Sequence record: PV764602.1
Length of the DNA: 64,000 nucleotides
Reading direction: 5' to 3' (one strand)
Shown here: positions 6,503 through 13,691 of the stretch, one piece after another
Layout: every line of letters begins with the position of its first letter
Numbering within the stretch: position 1 is the first letter of the stretch
Translations under genes and position numbers: made by a program
Notes under the pieces: model-generated
The model's input: only the letters and a program-made list of their open reading frames with translations
Told to the model about the DNA's origin: nothing
Database searches by the model: none

Positions 6503-8788
6503 ATGATTACCCATCAGGATACACTGTTCTCCAACATCCTATACGGAAATAATTGGAGTGCAGCTACCTACCAAGCCGCAAATCGGTTCACCATCCAAGG
6601 TGACAAGCGAACTTCGTATGAGGTAGGTACCCAGGTTCAGATTCTCACGTCTGCTGTAGCTACTATGCAGTACAGCTACGTTAGTGCAGTTACGTTCGCC
6701 TCCAACGTTACTACGGTGACGGTGAGCGACGGTCTATTCGCTTCGGGTCAGAAGATCAACGTTCGTGCATCGCCGTTTGGTGCCAACAACATGCCCCTCG
6801 GCCGACGCTTCAAAGAAATCAGCGTGTTCGGTGCGAACGGCCTGACGATCTCGAATGCGAGTCCGAAGTTCACCCTGTTCGTTGAAGGCGTTGGTGCGGG
6901 CAAGGTCAACACGTTCACTTTCCAGCCGGGCTCGGATGGTATCTCGTTCAAGGTTGGCCGTGATGCAATCGGTCTCGATGCCATGCGCATTGACGCCACT
7001 TCGACTGCCATCACCAAGGTGACGTTGTTCTCGCCCCTGACCTTTGGCGCGACGTATACGGGCGCCCTGACTTCGCTGACCGACCTTCTGACGATTGGTC
7101 AATACGCACTGACCTATTCGGCTACGGGTTCTTCGACCGGCAGCAATCGTCTGTATATCTCCGGCCCTAATGGCGGCGAGTTCACCGTTGGTCCTACCAA
7201 CGATGCTCAGGTATTCCGTCGTATTCGACTGCGTGCTACTGACGTTGTGGTCGAGAACAATCCCGGCGGTTCCTCGCAAGCAGGCTCGATCTGGCATAGC
7301 CTCAACTTCGATCCTGACACCCGTGTTACCAAGGGTCAGAATGGTTCTTGGATGGATTCGGCTTACACTGCGATCAACAACCTTAACAACGCTCAGGGGT
7401 ATTTCAACCAGTGGGCATCGGGCGCCGCACAGGCTCCTGTTGCAGGTTCGACGGGTGTTGTGCAAACCATGCACAGTGCGGGTGGCAACAACTTTAACCC
7501 TGTGGCTGGTGCTTCGCTGGTGCAGACGGCTTATGTCACCAATGGCACCGCACCTGCCCTGTATGTGCGACGCAACGTAGGTGCTTCGGGTTGGTCTGCA
7601 TGGACTAAGCTGTATACCCAAGCAGATTTCTCGCTTGGCGATTACGTCAAGATCGCAGGCGGTGATACCATCCAGTCCCCGATCACTGTACGTACTGCCT
7701 TGTCCGTTGGCACGACTGCGGATGCAACGTCCACCCTGAACTTCGGTACCTCGGCCAGTCCCAACGGTCCTGCTGCTACCATTTCTGTTACGGGCGGCGC
7801 AGCGACCACGGGTCGTGGTGCAATGACTATCAACGCGCAGTCCATCGCGCTGCCTGCACTGAACGTCAACGGTACGATGAACGTTTCGGGCGCTGCTTCG
7901 ATGGCGGGCCCACTGACCATCACTACTGGCTCCATACTGCTGGGTAACGGCACGTATGGGGAATCGCGTATTAGCAATACCTTCGACGACTGGTATTTGT
8001 ATTCCAGTCCTACGGGACTTGGCTGGTACAGTATCAGTAAGGGTAGTGCTTTCTCACTGGACAAGAACAGCAAGGCGTTCACGTTCAATGGTGCGGGTAC
8101 CATCAACGGTCAGACTACCATCAATGGTGGTCTGAACGTGGCGAGTGGTAGCGGTATCATCACTTCGGGCAACGTTGTTGGTGCCAACGGCAACTTCTCC
8201 AATGACGTGTTTGCTCCGGGCGCTTTCCGTGGTGCTCGCCTGCACATTTACGCAGGCTGCATTGCCTACGGTCAGGGCTTCCTGCCTAGCTGGAACGACT
8301 ACGGTGATGGCGCAACGGTCCTGACTAACGCACGCGGCGGTGGTACGGGCGGTTTCAAGTTCCGTCAGATGAATAGTGACGGTGGTGGTCAGGTTTTCCT
8401 TGCCTTCATCAACCCGAACGGTACCATCGGTTCGGCGTCGGACGAACGCATGAAGGAATTCGGTAAGGTACTCGACCTGTCTGACGCTCTTCGGTTCATC
8501 CGTGAGCAGCGAGTCAAGCATATCAAGTGGAAGCACACCGGCGAGGAGGATATTGCGTTTGGTGCGCAGAGCATCTTCAAGACCACTAGGTTCCTGGCCC
8601 ACTATGACAAGGGTGCTGACTTCTGGCAGCTGTACTACCCGAAGGTCGCTCTGTATCATCACGAAGCTCTCTTCCATATCCTTGAAGTGCAGAACAATCA
8701 CGAAGCCGACATTCAGATCCTGATTCGCAAGAACGAAAATCTGGAAGAGGAAGTGAAGCAGCTGCGCGAACGGTTGGATTCTCTCTAA
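6503..8788 (+). CDS. tail fibre with C-terminal intramolecular chaperone (peptidase S74)
   Basis: Gly/Thr-rich shaft; SGWSAW repeat; GSASDERMKE autocleavage motif followed by a C-terminal coiled coil. Confidence 0.85.
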   Translation: MITHQDTLFSNILYGNNWSAATYQAANRFTIQGDKRTSYEVGTQVQILTSAVATMQYSYVSAVTFASNVTTVTVSDGLFASGQKINVRASPFGANNMPLGRRFKEISVFGANGLTISNASPKFTLFVEGVGAGKVNTFTFQPGSDGISFKVGRDAIGLDAMRIDATSTAITKVTLFSPLTFGATYTGALTSLTDLLTIGQYALTYSATGSSTGSNRLYISGPNGGEFTVGPTNDAQVFRRIRLRATDVVVENNPGGSSQAGSIWHSLNFDPDTRVTKGQNGSWMDSAYTAINNLNNAQGYFNQWASGAAQAPVAGSTGVVQTMHSAGGNNFNPVAGASLVQTAYVTNGTAPALYVRRNVGASGWSAWTKLYTQADFSLGDYVKIAGGDTIQSPITVRTALSVGTTADATSTLNFGTSASPNGPAATISVTGGAATTGRGAMTINAQSIALPALNVNGTMNVSGAASMAGPLTITTGSILLGNGTYGESRISNTFDDWYLYSSPTGLGWYSISKGSAFSLDKNSKAFTFNGAGTINGQTTINGGLNVASGSGIITSGNVVGANGNFSNDVFAPGAFRGARLHIYAGCIAYGQGFLPSWNDYGDGATVLTNARGGGTGGFKFRQMNSDGGGQVFLAFINPNGTIGSASDERMKEFGKVLDLSDALRFIREQRVKHIKWKHTGEEDIAFGAQSIFKTTRFLAHYDKGADFWQLYYPKVALYHHEALFHILEVQNNHEADIQILIRKNENLEEEVKQLRERLDSL

Positions 8789-8821
8789 GGACATTGGGCA
8801 CAGGGACGTGCTCCCTTTTTA
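8786..8821 (+). promoter_or_regulatory. paired CsrA/RsmA-like sites (TAAGGACA + GCAC-AGGGAC-GTGC hairpin) followed by U-tract
   Basis: ACAGGGACGT matches (A/U)CANGGANG(U/A); the first site overlaps the fibre stop codon. Confidence 0.65.
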
Positions 8822-8831
8822 GGTAGAGGCT

Positions 8832-10223
8832 ATGTGGATCACCCCTCAGAATCAAACTCTTGATGACACGTTCGATCCATACTTTCCGGGTACAACTCGG
8901 TGGTATGGTTACACCGGCATCCTCATCAACAATACGCAAGACACCTACGATCGGTACGCTCCTTTGCAGTATGGCAGGCAAGCTCCATCCACGGCGATCC
9001 TTGCGCAGAATCAGGTAGACCTGAATCAGATTTACGCAGCCCGAGGTACAGCCGGCTACCTGCAAGGTATCTCTATCCCAAATTGCTACGTGGGCTGCTC
9101 TGGCGTTACCATCAACGATCTTCTCGCTGCTCGATGCACCATCATCATCAAGAACGACGGTACGTGGCAGCAGTGGTTCTATTCCACCAACTACAAGACG
9201 GATAGCCCGGGTGCATATGCACCTCCTAATCGTGGCATCCCTCGAACCGAAACCAACTTCAGCAACGGACGCATGAACGCCGCCGGTAACTGGGCACAGA
9301 TTCCGTTCGCTGGTGTGGGTAACAACTACGAGACTTTCTGCCACGCTCCTTGGGCTCCATACGAAAGCAAGAACCCACCTGATCTAGATTGGGGTACTGC
9401 CGATCACTATAATCGGTATGATGCTGCACTCATCAACTATATCTGGCACAACTTTAAGGGCCAAGGACAGTTCGGTAGTGCTAGTGATCCATACGTGGTG
9501 CAGAACACTACACAGAACCCTAATGAAGACATTCCAGATGGTCGGGTATATCGCATCGACCGCGATATTCGGTTCACCCTTGGCTTGACTGCACAGGGAC
9601 GCAACAACGTTCGTTGGAACTACGATGACAACGGTGCTCTGTCATGGTACAACCGAGCCAACTTTTCGGTGTACATTCAGACACCCGGCGGCGGTCAGCG
9701 TGTAGGTGCCACCTGCCTTATGACCAATGAGATTCGTTGGAATGCGTGGAATTGGACGGGTGGTAGTGTCGGCGGCGGTGGTGGCGGTGGTGGCGGTGGT
9801 TGCGTTGCTGCTACCAGCTATGTTGACTTCCAAAAGACCGCAGGCACTGTTGAGGCAGGCGACTACCTCATGGGTATGACGGATGATCTGCAATTTATGG
9901 AGCTACACGTCCTGAGTGTGCGTCGTCAAGTGCAACCGTGTGTCCGACTCTACTCAAAGAGTGGCGTCACCCTTGTGTGCTCAAAGTCCACGCCGCTGAC
10001 CCTACAGAACGGAGATTGCGTGCTGGCAGGCGAAGCACGAGCAGGTATCAAGCTTCCGGTACGATTCTTCGCGGCTGATCCTGAGTGGGAAACCATCGTC
10101 AAGATCGAGGAGGTTGGCAACCGGGAAGTGATGCTCATCAACTGCGGTGGACAGAGCTATGCTGCCGGTGAGTTGCCGGGCCGCTATATCTACACCCACA
10201 ACAACAACCAGCAGAAGATGTGA
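8832..10223 (+). CDS. putative tail-tip adhesin with poly-Gly linker and C-terminal Hint domain
   Basis: Three N-terminal repeats ending DLNQIYAARGTA; G10 at 9771-9800, then CVAATSYV (block A, Cys at 9801) and IYTHN (block G, 10197-10202). Confidence 0.75.
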   Translation: MWITPQNQTLDDTFDPYFPGTTRWYGYTGILINNTQDTYDRYAPLQYGRQAPSTAILAQNQVDLNQIYAARGTAGYLQGISIPNCYVGCSGVTINDLLAARCTIIIKNDGTWQQWFYSTNYKTDSPGAYAPPNRGIPRTETNFSNGRMNAAGNWAQIPFAGVGNNYETFCHAPWAPYESKNPPDLDWGTADHYNRYDAALINYIWHNFKGQGQFGSASDPYVVQNTTQNPNEDIPDGRVYRIDRDIRFTLGLTAQGRNNVRWNYDDNGALSWYNRANFSVYIQTPGGGQRVGATCLMTNEIRWNAWNWTGGSVGGGGGGGGGGCVAATSYVDFQKTAGTVEAGDYLMGMTDDLQFMELHVLSVRRQVQPCVRLYSKSGVTLVCSKSTPLTLQNGDCVLAGEARAGIKLPVRFFAADPEWETIVKIEEVGNREVMLINCGGQSYAAGELPGRYIYTHNNNQQKM

Positions 10224-10642
10224 TGATTGGTTCTGACCAACTCTCAGAAGTAGGTGTACCTGTCGGAGAGCTCTCCATTGGGAGGACTCTCGACGTATAT
10301 GCGGTGGACGATCTACACTCGGTCATCCGCCTGAAAGGAACCGTCTCAAATCGGGTCCTGCGCAGTGCAGAAGTAGTAACCATCACAACTGCCTCCGGCG
10401 CTTCCGTTGTGGTGGCTGCCCAAAGTCGCCTCCCTGTCTATAGCGGACAGACAGCGCTGGCTAAGAATGTTGGTGCCAACATGATTGCTGTGATGGCCCC
10501 TAATGGCGCTTTTCGGTGGGAGCGGGTTGCCACCATCGAGGCTGGTACTGAGGCCGTAGTGGACCTCAAGTGTGAAGGCTACATAGTAGCCGGTAACGAT
10601 CCTAAAACCGGGCTAATCTTGGTGTCTGGATCGCTGCCGTGA
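10220..10642 (+). CDS. stand-alone degenerate Hint-like protein
   Basis: Aligns by eye with the upstream Hint domain (V.ITT.SG..V..S...LP; WE.V..IE.G...V.DL.C.G...AG) but lacks the catalytic Cys and HN. Confidence 0.6.
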   Translation: MMIGSDQLSEVGVPVGELSIGRTLDVYAVDDLHSVIRLKGTVSNRVLRSAEVVTITTASGASVVVAAQSRLPVYSGQTALAKNVGANMIAVMAPNGAFRWERVATIEAGTEAVVDLKCEGYIVAGNDPKTGLILVSGSLP

Positions 10643-10656
10643 CAGTCAATTTTACG

Positions 10657-10685
10657 TAAGGACATAAGGCTACGGATAGCAGCCT
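10657..10685 (+). promoter_or_regulatory. paired CsrA-like sites TAAGGACA and GCT-ACGGAT-AGC hairpin
   Basis: Two ANGGAY cores 14 nt apart in the leader of the 10722 gene. Confidence 0.5.
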
Positions 10686-10721
10686 CACATAAAGACACTT
10701 CCCAACAAATAAGGAACGATC

Positions 10722-11399
10722 ATGCAACTCCAGGTTCTTCTCTCCTCTGTCGAAGCTCTCAAGTACGTTGCCGGCCTGCGGCTGCCTGCTGTCAAGGCGT
10801 TCAAGGTCAGTTCATACCTGCAACGTGCTCAGGTCCATATTGACGCATGGCAGGCAACTGGCCGGACTCTGGCCCAGCGCCACTACGGCGAAGACCAGCA
10901 GCCGCTGTCTCCCGAAGACGCCGTACAGTTCAAGGCAGCCACTGACGAAGTGCTTGCTTCGGACGTCGAAGTCGATACTGTCAAGCTCCTGAGCTACCCG
11001 GCAGACTTCAAGGAGGAAAGTTTCATCCCCCTGAACATGGCCATCCTGTCTGAGCACTTTGTTGACGTTACCAAGCCCGAAGCTACTGGTGTCACTAAGA
11101 TTAGTCGGGGTAAGCTGATTGGTGCCTACATGTCCCTGCAACAGCTGGGTCAGCAGGAACTGCCGAAGGCCGTTGGCGAAAATTTGCTGTTCAACCTGAT
11201 GACGGTCCGAGACCTACTGAATTCGTTCTCGGAACGCGACGGTGAACTGACTAAGCAGGGCGATGCGAAGGCTCTGGAGGAATATCGTTCCGAGGAAGTG
11301 GAGGTCAACTTCTATCCCATCAACATCAATGCGTTTGGTGATGTTGAAGTGGCTCCGGCACTTCTCGTAGATGCCGCGTGGCTCATCACTGAGGAATGA
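10722..11399 (+). CDS. hypothetical protein with two tandem copies of a DUF1617-like domain
   Basis: Halves share L...LP.....L...L.......EVEV pattern; AAGGA RBS. Confidence 0.6.
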   Translation: MQLQVLLSSVEALKYVAGLRLPAVKAFKVSSYLQRAQVHIDAWQATGRTLAQRHYGEDQQPLSPEDAVQFKAATDEVLASDVEVDTVKLLSYPADFKEESFIPLNMAILSEHFVDVTKPEATGVTKISRGKLIGAYMSLQQLGQQELPKAVGENLLFNLMTVRDLLNSFSERDGELTKQGDAKALEEYRSEEVEVNFYPININAFGDVEVAPALLVDAAWLITEE

Positions 11400-11402
11400 T
11401 TC

Positions 11403-11948
11403 ATGGCTGAGTTTGACATTGCCTATAGGCAGCAGAACATCGAGTCGGATTTGATTGATGATCCTACTGACCCTGGGGCTGTGACAAACTATGGTTGGAA
11501 CCTTGGCTCCCTCCGCTTGGTGGGAGTCGAGGCCGACTACGAATTCGTCAAGAGTATGACGGCGGCAACTGCCAAGGAATTGTATCGTCAGTATTTCTGG
11601 CATCCACTTTGGACCGAACTCAAATGTCAGCAGGCGGCAAACAAGCTGTTTACCCTCGCTGTGACAACGTGTGCACCCAACAACTTCAACTTGGCTACTC
11701 GCTGTTTGCAGAGGGCCTTGTGGGCATCGGGCGCTTACGTGCATGAGGATGGAAAGCTTACAGAGGATGTAATAAGCGCGGCTAACGCCGTTGAGTGTTC
11801 GGCCCTAAGCTCTGCCATGCGTAGTGAAATGGCCTCCTACTACAGGACGCTTAACGCGGAGTATGAACTGAGGGTCAAGTACAAGCTGCCCGTGGTAGTC
11901 CCCGTGAATCGTTACATTCGCGTGTGGCTTCACAACTCCTATCGTTGA
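11403..11948 (+). CDS. glycoside hydrolase 108-like lysozyme (divergent)
   Basis: ESDLIDDPTDPGAVTNYG resembles GH108 EGGYxxxPxDPGGETxYG; LQRAL...DG peptidoglycan-binding segment. Confidence 0.75.
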   Translation: MAEFDIAYRQQNIESDLIDDPTDPGAVTNYGWNLGSLRLVGVEADYEFVKSMTAATAKELYRQYFWHPLWTELKCQQAANKLFTLAVTTCAPNNFNLATRCLQRALWASGAYVHEDGKLTEDVISAANAVECSALSSAMRSEMASYYRTLNAEYELRVKYKLPVVVPVNRYIRVWLHNSYR

Positions 11949-11958
11949 AGAGGATGGC

Positions 11959-12684
11959 ATGACCATGAGCACGGAAACCGTTCTGATCGGTCTTGGCTGT
12001 CTACCTGATAACGCTCAAGCCCTTGAGGGGGCGTGCATTCGGTACGGCATCGAGACTACGTGGCACAAGTCCATTTTCATCGGACAGATCGCTGTAGAAA
12101 CAGGTGGCTTCCGTGCCACCCGCGAAAGCATGAATTACAGCGTTGAAGGTCTTATCAATGGTTTTGGCCGTCACCGTATCAGTGTGGCGGACGCTCAGAA
12201 ATACGGGCGTATTGATAAGGTCGTGAACGGCAAGAAAACTGTTATCCGAGCAGCTAACCAAGTAGCCATCGCCAACATCCTGTACGGCGGTGAGTGGGGA
12301 CGCAAGAATTTGGGTAATACCGAGTTGAACGACGGATGGAATTTCAGGGGCGGCGGTGACAAGCAATTGACTGGCCGCGCTAATTGGACCAACTACAGCA
12401 TGGACACCTATGGTGACTTGCGTGTGCTGGAGAATCCTACTCTGATCGAACTCTATCCCGACAAGAGCTACACTGCTGGTTGGTTCTGGCAACGCAACAA
12501 GCTGGGTGACATTGCTTCGCAATATGTGCTCCCTGATGATCCCAAATCTCCGGAGTACGATTCCATCCTGCGTTCTACTGTTACGGTAGTTACCAAGAAG
12601 GTCAACGGCGGTGACAAGGGTTTGGAGGATCGCATCATGTGGACGAAAAAGGCCCTGCAAGGCTTCAATCAACTCGTACTGTGA
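11959..12684 (+). CDS. endolysin, glycoside hydrolase family 19
   Basis: FIGQIAVETGGF, DGWNFRGGGDKQLTGRANW, VTKKVNGG..GLEDR motifs. Confidence 0.9.
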   Translation: MTMSTETVLIGLGCLPDNAQALEGACIRYGIETTWHKSIFIGQIAVETGGFRATRESMNYSVEGLINGFGRHRISVADAQKYGRIDKVVNGKKTVIRAANQVAIANILYGGEWGRKNLGNTELNDGWNFRGGGDKQLTGRANWTNYSMDTYGDLRVLENPTLIELYPDKSYTAGWFWQRNKLGDIASQYVLPDDPKSPEYDSILRSTVTVVTKKVNGGDKGLEDRIMWTKKALQGFNQLVL

Positions 12685-12690
12685 CTAACG

Positions 12691-12720
12691 TGCTGGGAAC
12701 ATTAGTTCCCAGCATTCTTC
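12691..12720 (+). terminator. Rho-independent terminator
   Basis: TGCTGGGAAC-ATTA-GTTCCCAGCA followed by TTCTTC. Confidence 0.7.
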
Positions 12721-12736
12721 GTATAGGCCCCTGACT

Positions 12737-13102
12737 ATGAGAATTTTAGCCAATAGCACCAAGGTACGCGAAGGGGATTTCTCCAAGCTTCGTATCCCAA
12801 AAGCAAAGCAAGTCAAGGTGCACACGCATGACGCATGGCAGGGCCGAAAGAATCATCACCTGTCCTACGATTTTACTGCACCTAGCACTAGCATGCACCA
12901 TCAAGCAGTCGGGAAGGCCATCCATGAGCATCTTGCGTCTCATGGCCTGTCTCCACACAAACGCTCCAGTTCGGGCAACACGGTTACCATTGAGTACAGG
13001 CACCCATCGGGTCACCGCGCCGTTGTCAAGATGAAGCGTACAAAGCTCGCAGGCGATCCCAACCATCACGTGGAATTCGCCGTAGAGAAGACCGGTAACT
13101 AA
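12737..13102 (+). CDS. His-rich basic protein, homologous to modules of the 23416 protein
   Basis: AIHEHLASHGLSPH...EYRHPSGHRAVV resembles HIHTKLHEAGFQPH...YRDASGHEARV. Confidence 0.7.
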   Translation: MRILANSTKVREGDFSKLRIPKAKQVKVHTHDAWQGRKNHHLSYDFTAPSTSMHHQAVGKAIHEHLASHGLSPHKRSSSGNTVTIEYRHPSGHRAVVKMKRTKLAGDPNHHVEFAVEKTGN

Positions 13103-13122
13103 CACTTCAATGAGGTAACGTC

Positions 13123-13464
13123 ATGCCCTTGTGGTTGACTGCATGGTTTGCGAAAATGTGGGCCAAGTGCTCGCAGTATGTCATTGCCGCTGGCTCCATA
13201 TTGGCGGCAATTGCTGGTATCTTCCTGTACGGTCGCTTCAAGGGTAAGTCCGCCGCCGATGCAAAGCATGCGGAGCAGGATGCGAAACGAATTGAGGCTG
13301 AAACCAAGATCGTTGAGAAGATCGACCAAGCTCACGAATCTACCCGTGAGCAGGTCGAGGAAAAAATCGAGAAAATCCCTGCTCCAACTACGGATCCTAA
13401 CGAGACAGTTAGGGTGGGGGATGCACCTAAAGATTCGGCCGCAGGCAAATTGAGGGGCTGGTAA
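13123..13464 (+). CDS. inner-membrane spanin (Rz-like)
   Basis: N-terminal TM (YVIAAGSILAAIAGIFLYG) followed by a coiled coil; coupled to a lipoprotein gene. Confidence 0.8.
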   Translation: MPLWLTAWFAKMWAKCSQYVIAAGSILAAIAGIFLYGRFKGKSAADAKHAEQDAKRIEAETKIVEKIDQAHESTREQVEEKIEKIPAPTTDPNETVRVGDAPKDSAAGKLRGW

Positions 13465-13691
13465 TGAAAACTCTCCTGATTATCGCCATCGCCTTACTTG
13501 CAGGCTGCGCAACTACTCCACAAGTGGTGGCTCAAACCGACATTTGCGCTGGCTGGAAGGCCATCAAGGTCAACGAAAACGACGAATTCACGGATGGAAC
13601 TGCCAAGCAGATTCTAGCGCACAATTGTCAAGGCGCAGCCTTGAAGTGCTGGGCCTATCCGAGGAATGATCCCCAAATTTGTGAACGCTAA
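13464..13691 (+). CDS. outer-membrane spanin lipoprotein (Rz1-like)
   Basis: Lipobox LLAGC; additional Cys residues; TAATG overlap with the i-spanin. Confidence 0.8.
   Translation: MKTLLIIAIALLAGCATTPQVVAQTDICAGWKAIKVNENDEFTDGTAKQILAHNCQGAALKCWAYPRNDPQICER

Follow-up and report, generated by a model that had tools for sequence, protein, structure and literature searches.

Hint domains are self-processing catalysts in inteins, in Hedgehog proteins, in BIL domains and in the toxin-releasing PT-HINT modules, and the superfamily itself is well known. Here we describe a Hint domain that appears to have been stripped of its chemistry and retained as a gene of its own. It lies in a window of 64,000 nucleotides (the whole stretch of DNA that was analysed) from the Xanthomonas phage PhiXhv-15 (PV764602.1), a jumbo myovirus of 228.7 kb isolated on X. 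hortorum pv. vitians (PMC13340338). In this window, a 139-amino acid open reading frame (ORF), termed ORF139, overlaps the end of a gene in the tail-fibre module whose 463-amino acid product terminates in a Hint module of its own. ORF139 is an ancient Hint paralogue of this upstream module and is a real, selected gene. The new element is the pairing of a stand-alone, apparently dead copy with an apparently active one: the literature searched describes neither a conserved, catalytically dead Hint domain that stands alone and accompanies an active one nor Hint-tailed phage fibre-module proteins. Kept under selection beside an active copy, a stand-alone Hint domain stripped of chemistry would represent the fold as a pseudoenzyme, and the pair offers a simple two-gene system for asking what the Hint scaffold does apart from catalysis.

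Among described systems, the mini-inteins (NpuDnaB, 4o1r; SspDnaB, 1mi8/6fre; gp41-1, 6riz) share the horseshoe fold, with template-modelling (TM) scores of 0.7-0.75 to ORF139 and 0.81 to the upstream module. However, ORF139 has neither a host protein nor exteins, carries Met in place of Cys/Ser1, and is without both the T-x-x-H motif and the terminal His-Asn. The upstream module does possess Cys1 and His-Asn, but it has neither a +1 nucleophile nor a block-B His and so is no splicing intein either. Structurally, ORF139 was most similar to the Hedgehog Hog/Hint domain (1at0, 6tyy), for which a thioester and acceptor mechanism has been described (PMC7765530), and the upstream protein resembles Hedgehog in layout, a cargo domain being followed by a Gly|Cys junction and a Hint at the C-terminus. 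The two genes nevertheless depart from Hedgehog in different ways, the upstream protein having only a six-residue tail where a sterol-recognition region would be and ORF139 having no nucleophile. A-type BIL domains (2lwy) likewise combine Cys1 and His-Asn without a C-flanking nucleophile, occur on variable, non-conserved proteins, and were among the structural matches of the upstream module; this comparison rests on Amitai (2003) and Dassa (2004) as summarised in PMC7765530. In contrast to A-type BIL domains, the upstream module has no Pfam Hint-clan match, carries Thr in place of the block-B His, and is hosted by phage tail-fibre-module proteins, while ORF139 lacks every one of their catalytic features. 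In layout, the upstream module comes nearest to autoprocessing domains of the A-type BIL or Hedgehog kind.

PT-HINT domains of polymorphic toxins and of phage tail (gpJ-like) proteins, which show that Hints can be attached to phage tail proteins, were shape and feature neighbours of ORF139 in the ESM Atlas. Unlike these, the present pair has no sequence-model match and is followed by no toxin domain, and ORF139 stands alone and is apparently inactive. The upstream Hint module also has a functional analogue in the Peptidase_S74 chaperone, a self-cleaving C-terminal module of fibre proteins, although fold and chemistry (a Ser-Lys dyad) are unrelated; we know of no stand-alone dead paralogue for S74. 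Fibre assembly chaperones of phrog_1158, in phages RTH11 and LucasX, occupy the same slot after a Hint-tailed gene and are of similarly small size, but ORF139 has no sequence similarity to them and has a Hint fold.

The paralogy of ORF139 and the upstream module was barely visible in pairwise comparison (BLASTP, 26% identity over 74 amino acids, E = 0.003) and became clear with profiles. When a profile of six ORF139 orthologues was aligned by hhalign with a profile of eleven Hint modules, the match scored 98.4% (E = 8.5e-15) over 123 columns, beginning at residue 3 of both, and matches of hidden Markov models (HMMs) between the two families were reciprocal. The four motif pairings on which the original prediction had based a shared Hint-like scaffold are those recovered by this profile-profile alignment. 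A profile search of 1.84 billion representative proteins returned six clusters of ORF139 orthologues, all of 137-139 amino acids, and next the Hint-tailed proteins P0016, P0017 and P0020 at E-values of 8e-5 to 5e-4. A profile built from the ORF139 family only matched the inteins NpuDnaB (4o1r; E = 0.0065) and TvoVMA (4o1s; E = 0.027) among PDB sequences, all further matches being inteins as well, and those protein-language-model (ESM) neighbours of ORF139 that have a Pfam family all belonged to the Hint clan. None of the Pfam Hint-clan models (Hint, PT-HINT, Hint_2, Intein_splicing, Vint) matched any of 17 family members at E-values up to 1, and a scan of the same 17 members, including ORF139, against PHROGs found no relevant family.

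Structure prediction by AlphaFold2 (AF2) gave a confident model of ORF139, with a mean predicted local distance difference test (pLDDT) of 94.1 and a predicted TM score (pTM) of 0.88. In a Foldseek search of the PDB, its best 50 matches were all Hedgehog, intein or BIL structures (TM 0.65-0.75), with values of 0.72-0.75 to Hedgehog and DnaB inteins; shape matches in the ESM Atlas (TM ~0.8) and in BFVD were Hint-bearing proteins. Prediction of both proteins had been proposed as a check, an unrelated fold being the outcome that would have told against paralogy, and it yielded a Hint fold in ORF139 as well as in the C-terminal module of the upstream protein. Met1 of ORF139 aligns with Cys1 of the module, and its last strand, Leu-Ile-Leu-Val-Ser, aligns with Tyr-Ile-Tyr-Thr-His-Asn. 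In three orthologues the protein stops precisely where the terminal Asn would be, whereas the others continue for another 2-4 residues, ORF139 itself carrying Val134-Ser135 at the His-Asn positions followed by a 4-residue extension. ORF139 is thus a free-standing Hint domain trimmed to the domain's first and last residues.

The original prediction that Cys1 and the terminal His-Asn are missing was borne out, Met and Val-Ser being found in their place. Met1 occupies the Cys/Ser1 position in 6/6 orthologues, and the terminal His-Asn is replaced across the family by Val-Ser, Val-Gln or Val-Gly. Ala and Ser stand at the Thr and His positions of the block-B T-x-x-H motif in the window protein, and both positions vary among orthologues; the T-P-x-T segment (the block-B equivalent) and Asp21 are also gone. 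In all, Asp21, Thr64, Pro65, Thr67, Gly106, Tyr120, Gly123, His133 and Asn134 are strongly conserved in the active modules and not in the dead family. This joint loss of the whole presumed catalytic set, which takes in each polar residue that never varies in the active module, suggests, as far as sequence can tell, that ORF139 is indeed catalytically dead. Furthermore, the protein stands alone and spans the domain only, without the exteins that an inserted intein would have, and it cannot autoprocess since there is no flanking polypeptide. The best-conserved segments of ORF139, residues 81-104 and 116-134, are equivalent to blocks F and G, which supply strands and a loop of the splice-junction cleft in active Hints. 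The dead family also has invariant residues of its own (Asn86, Gly95 and Gly130), and no Lys or Cys is invariant across its six lineages, Lys128 and Cys118 each being lost in some.

The open reading frame exists as originally predicted, but the start assigned to it, at 10220, is a GTG one codon too early; the true start is the ATG at 10223, since all orthologues begin at an ATG (MI[AG]..., Met-Ile/Ala), and the GenBank annotation likewise starts the gene there. The upstream gene ends in ...AAG ATG TGA, and one base is common to its TGA and the ATG of ORF139, so that the predicted overlap with the upstream stop can be read directly from the sequence. The overlap, in the form of TGATG, TAATG or ATGA, is kept in 6/6 lineages. 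A GAGG-type Shine-Dalgarno motif lies 5-10 nucleotides before the start in 9/11 neighbouring genes; no GAGG motif lies ahead of ORF139, where the stretch is purine-poor and encodes Gln-Lys of the upstream protein. Translation of ORF139 most likely proceeds by termination-reinitiation off the message of the upstream gene, an arrangement that would link the amounts of the two proteins.

Conservation of ORF139 across its relatives shows it to be a real, selected gene. The six lineages share only 28-53% identity, yet length is constant (137-139 amino acids) and the motifs Thr-Thr-x-x-Gly, Asn-Leu-Val-Ala-Val, Asn-Gly-x-Phe-Arg-Trp-Glu-Arg-Val and Ala-Gly-Asn-Asp-Pro-Lys-x-Gly-Leu-Ile-Leu-Val are kept in all six. 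ORF139 and its counterpart in Xanthomonas phage Ep026 differ by 5 synonymous and 2 non-synonymous changes, which gives a ratio per site (pN/pS) of ~0.15 from few sites. In a maximum-likelihood tree, the dead family formed one clade (100/100) on a long branch from all active modules, and its internal topology mirrored the tree of the adjacent active modules. The mirrored topology and the long branch point to an old duplication followed by co-inheritance. The possibility that the frame is eroded and not conserved in relatives is contradicted by its intact state in six lineages. Co-occurrence was another check proposed at the outset: in 6/6 lineages of the dead family a Hint-tailed ORF lies directly upstream (HMM E-values of 1e-46 or better) with overlapping stop and start. 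Among the proteins of the exhaustive profile search, every member of the ORF139 family sat next to a Hint-tailed gene, and the window contains no other Hint-like ORF.

The family is narrow, comprising six clusters at 50% identity in one jumbo-phage clade. A word-indexed protein search with ORF139 returned only the near-identical copy of Ep026 and Ep032, tblastn against 50,697 phage records found only five near-identical genomes, and a scan of IMG/VR with the family alignment found no relative. Some candidates were set aside. Weak profile matches in P0015, P0018, P0019 and P0021 cover only ~30-35 residues and are repeated inside proteins with immunoglobulin-like (Ig) repeats, P0019 consisting of Kre9/Big domains; we took them as spurious beta-hairpin similarity. 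The short Hint-like proteins P0022-P0032, retrieved with a joint profile, were rejected as further dead copies: they keep T-H-N and look like truncated calls of active modules. As for the distribution of the region itself, Xanthomonas phage Ep026 (OQ603353.1) and 'Erwinia' phage Ep032 (OQ603359.1) are ~97.7% identical to it and near-identical to each other, despite the different host genera recorded. Sequence near-identical to window positions 7500-12500 also occurs in metagenomes from wastewater, drinking water, freshwater and honey, and in several runs that share the label of a single organism; these public-run matches are assembler contigs of flat depth, which show presence rather than transcription.

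The upstream protein consists of an N-terminal domain, a poly-glycine linker, the Hint module and a short tail (Table 1). An alignment of 11 Hint modules revealed invariant Cys/Ser1, Asp21, Ser61, Thr64-Pro65, Thr67, Trp96, Tyr-Ala-Ala-Gly and Thr-His-Asn. Where the block-B His would be, these modules have Thr64, within Ser-x-Ser-Thr-Pro-Leu-Thr. As in A-type BIL and Hedgehog-like domains, Gly-Cys/Ser and T-H-N are invariant in at least 11 modules while the +1 residue varies. The invariant Cys1 and His-Asn suggest that the module is active and autocleaving. Foldseek with this module returned only Hint-superfamily structures, the gp41-1 intein leading at TM 0.81, followed by DnaB inteins, BIL and Hedgehog; the profile of the 11 modules matched the gp41-1 intein among PDB sequences at E = 0.046, and a Pfam scan of the 463-amino acid protein detected nothing. 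In the AF2 prediction of this protein, residues 322-457 had pLDDT values of 70-94 and the N-terminal domain values below 50, giving no usable model of the latter. That domain matches phrog_11610 (unknown function) over residues 10-120, and profile searches found no homologue of it in the PDB, Pfam or the ESM Atlas. The original prediction had called the protein an adhesin, a label that is unsupported; its tail-fibre-module context alone is established. A Lys near the C-terminus is conserved in the 5-8-residue tail after His-Asn, K462 being invariant in alignment A4.

The Hint module is portable, since it caps unrelated N-terminal parts in different proteins: a 140-amino acid Cys-rich domain in XacN1 ORF231 and its metagenomic relatives, a 444-amino acid protein in RTH11 and LucasX, a VrlC-like protein of 1,824 amino acids in Stenotrophomonas phage DLP_6, and a fibre-like protein of 988 amino acids with collagen repeats (P0017). 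All Hint-tailed proteins found share a Gly run before Cys/Ser1, a terminal T/S-His-Asn and a short tail. These modules form a family that has no annotation and escapes both Pfam and PHROGs, in which a poly-Gly plus Cys...His-Asn Hint caps tail-fibre-module proteins of Xanthomonas and Stenotrophomonas phages; it is relevant to the receptor-binding-protein biology of phages developed for biocontrol (PMC13340338). In DLP_6 (KU682439.2, 157096-162570), the 'VlrC' protein ends in poly-Gly and Hint with a terminal Ser-His-Asn, and its stop codon is overlapped by the following gene, which is again annotated VlrC. In XacN1-type phages, the Hint gene is followed by a 55-amino acid ORF and then by a gene with weak matches to tail-assembly-chaperone PHROGs; the XacN1 paper and its supplement hold no virion-proteome statement on ORF231. 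The poly-Gly-coding repeat of the window (9759-9806, + strand) was flagged as a break point of contigs in public runs, and 21 gap letters occur at some point along the stretch in two contigs from related strains, so that linker length may vary between strains.

We propose that ORF139 is a non-catalytic, co-translated binding partner of the Hint-tailed protein, or an accessory in its assembly or processing, and that it acts via its former cleft; the binding is hypothesised, and we give the proposal roughly an even chance of being right. ORF139 would be made by reinitiation after the upstream stop, in an amount linked to that of the Hint-tailed protein, and would bind the upstream tail-fibre-module protein without performing any chemistry. 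The binding surface would probably be the former splice-junction cleft, the best-conserved part of ORF139. A chaperone-like role is plausible because the same slot holds fibre chaperones in other phages and because ORF139 descends from a cis-acting C-terminal module. As with Tfa-type chaperones, the gene lies directly downstream of, and overlaps, that of its presumed client in 6/6 lineages; however, ORF139 belongs to none of the known Tfa families, having no PHROG or Pfam match and a Hint fold.

Several observations weigh against this proposal. The Hint module of XacN1-type phages is 50-54% identical to the upstream module and nested in the partnered clade, and yet has no dead partner; RTH11 and LucasX encode a phrog_11610 N-terminal region joined to a Hint module, and their next gene is for a phrog_1158 tail assembly chaperone, not a dead Hint; and the module of DLP_6 is likewise partnerless. 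Branches of the dead copies are 2-3 times longer than those of their active partners. Co-occurrence in six lineages could mirror vertical inheritance in one syntenic jumbo-phage clade, and the 225-amino acid gene downstream could be the real fibre chaperone; its product has no similarity to the chaperone-like genes of RTH11, LucasX and XacN1. Lastly, 11 of the 17 rows in the AF2 alignment for ORF139 were active Hint modules, and such a mixed alignment could favour a Hint fold in the model; the sequence-only evidence for homology is independent of it. The partnerless modules also bear on the original idea of a two-component autoprocessing system, in which the inactive copy might be a regulator, dimer partner or acceptor-binding subunit. 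An obligate system of this kind is unlikely, considering that related Hints (XacN1, RTH11, LucasX, DLP_6) do without a partner and that the partnered modules show no obviously missing residue for a partner to supply. The dead Hint would accordingly be a lineage-specific accessory rather than an obligate half of the chemistry.

Rather than serving the Hint-tailed protein, ORF139 might be an independent component of the tail-fibre module (a chaperone acting in trans on a different fibre, an adaptor, or a virion protein of small size) in which Hint is only a scaffold and adjacency results from the duplication. We regard this, the main rival, as possible though doubtful. It would account for the Hint modules that lack a dead partner in other phages, for the strong divergence from the active module and for the invariant Asn86, Gly95 and Gly130 peculiar to the dead family, and several fibre-like genes do lie nearby. 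It sits less well with a stop/start overlap strictly kept in 6/6 lineages in three sequence forms, with the lack of a ribosome-binding motif of its own, and with the constant position of ORF139 beside the Hint-tailed gene among proteins of the exhaustive search. Adjacency and overlap also count against a function unrelated to virion assembly, such as host takeover or counter-defence, for which the Hint fold would have been reused: jumbo phages carry many small accessory genes, and ORF139 matches no assigned family or function, but it shares the orientation of the late tail-fibre/lysis block in which it lies, and in every lineage it overlaps a gene of the fibre module, which makes such a function improbable.

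The likeness to Hedgehog raises a different prospect. The pair might be a two-protein, Hedgehog-like ligation device in which the active Hint makes a poly-Gly thioester and the dead Hint, docking via its cleft, controls the timing and target of its resolution. Unlikely as this is, the thioester could then give rise to a covalent bond with a different virion protein or with a molecule of the host envelope instead of being simply hydrolysed, and the dead Hint would be the first pseudo-Hint regulator of Hint chemistry. A related reading, in which ORF139 is itself the acceptor or acceptor-holding subunit, so that a nucleophile that it presents or binds resolves the Gly-Cys thioester and the N-terminal domain becomes covalently attached via its poly-Gly C-terminus, seems to us improbable. 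The upstream poly-Gly-Cys does resemble the Hedgehog Gly|Cys junction and is accompanied by a six-residue tail only, with no sterol-recognition-type extension; the former active-site region is what ORF139 conserves best, and Hedgehog Hint is its top structural match. However, the dead family offers no invariant Lys or Cys as an acceptor (Lys128 and Cys118 being lost in some lineages), and partnerless Hint modules have the same junction and tail.

Two further readings are scarcely credible. A decaying, functionless duplicate or untranslated ORF would explain the lost catalytic residues and the faster evolution relative to the active copy, but not a frame of 137-139 amino acids that stays intact, with its motifs, in six lineages down to 28% identity, nor the bias of substitutions to synonymous ones and the confidently predicted fold. 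Fusion of ORF139 to the upstream protein by a -1 frameshift, which would yield a tandem Hint-Hint product, has as little to commend it. Seen from the upstream gene, ORF139 does lie in the -1 frame, and programmed frameshifts are known in phage tail genes; against this, there is no conserved slippery heptamer, the ORF139 frame is open for just 3-5 codons before the ATG in the relatives L016 and L003, and every orthologue has the conserved ATG followed by Ile/Ala.

Table 1. Features of the Hint pair and its surroundings, in window positions.
Feature	Position	Strand	Remarks
761-amino acid tail-fibre gene	6503..8788	+	C-terminal Peptidase_S74-type self-cleaving intramolecular chaperone, motif Ser-Asp-Glu-Arg-Met-Lys
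Hint-tailed protein gene, tail-fibre module (XYR93251.1)	8832..10223	+	Assigned from annotation and synteny with tail-fibre genes
N-terminal domain, residues 1-313	8832..9770	+	Conserved in relatives; ends in motif NEIRWNAWNW-x-GG
Poly-glycine linker, Gly314-Gly323 (ten Gly)	9771..9800	+	Directly precedes the Hint nucleophile; predicted Gly|Cys cleavage junction
Hint module, Cys324 to Thr-His-Asn457 (134 residues)	9801..10202	+	Invariant Cys/Ser1, S-x-S-T-P-L-T, W, YAAG, T-H-N
Six-residue tail NNQQKM after His-Asn	10203..10220	+	No Cys, Ser or Thr at +1
Stop/start junction ATGTGATG	10218..10225	+	Upstream Met463 codon and TGA; ATG of ORF139 uses the A of TGA
ORF139	10223..10642	+	139 amino acids; stop codon 10640-10642; GenBank hypothetical protein XYR93252.1
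225-amino acid gene	10722..11399	+	Conserved, downstream of ORF139; no family match; lysis genes next
GH108	11403-11948	+	Lysis block
Second glycoside hydrolase	11959-12684	+	GH19-like in relatives
Rz/Rz1-type spanins, overlapping	13123-13464 and 13464-13691	+	Lysis block (11403-13691)

The pair is embedded in a block with the order tail fibre, 115-amino acid gene, 761-amino acid fibre, Hint-tailed gene, dead Hint, 225-amino acid gene, GH108, GH19-like gene and spanins. The S74 model (PF13884) matched orthologues of the 761-amino acid fibre at E = 6.2e-8 (L016) and 5e-4 (L002), and the window copy at the same position with a sub-threshold E-value of 0.065. With S74 on this fibre and Hint on the next protein, two consecutive fibre-module genes would end in self-cleaving modules of different kinds. 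In L002, a metagenomic relative whose upstream protein is 57% identical, a 279-amino acid ORF (8881-9720, + strand) follows the endolysin genes and weakly matches the PF03496 ADP-ribosylating exotoxin family; the window has no counterpart at that position. A scan of the region for promoters and terminators gave site counts at chance level. The gap between the 761-amino acid fibre and Hint-tailed genes contains a hairpin with a T-run (8796-8816, + strand), which may be a terminator or attenuator.

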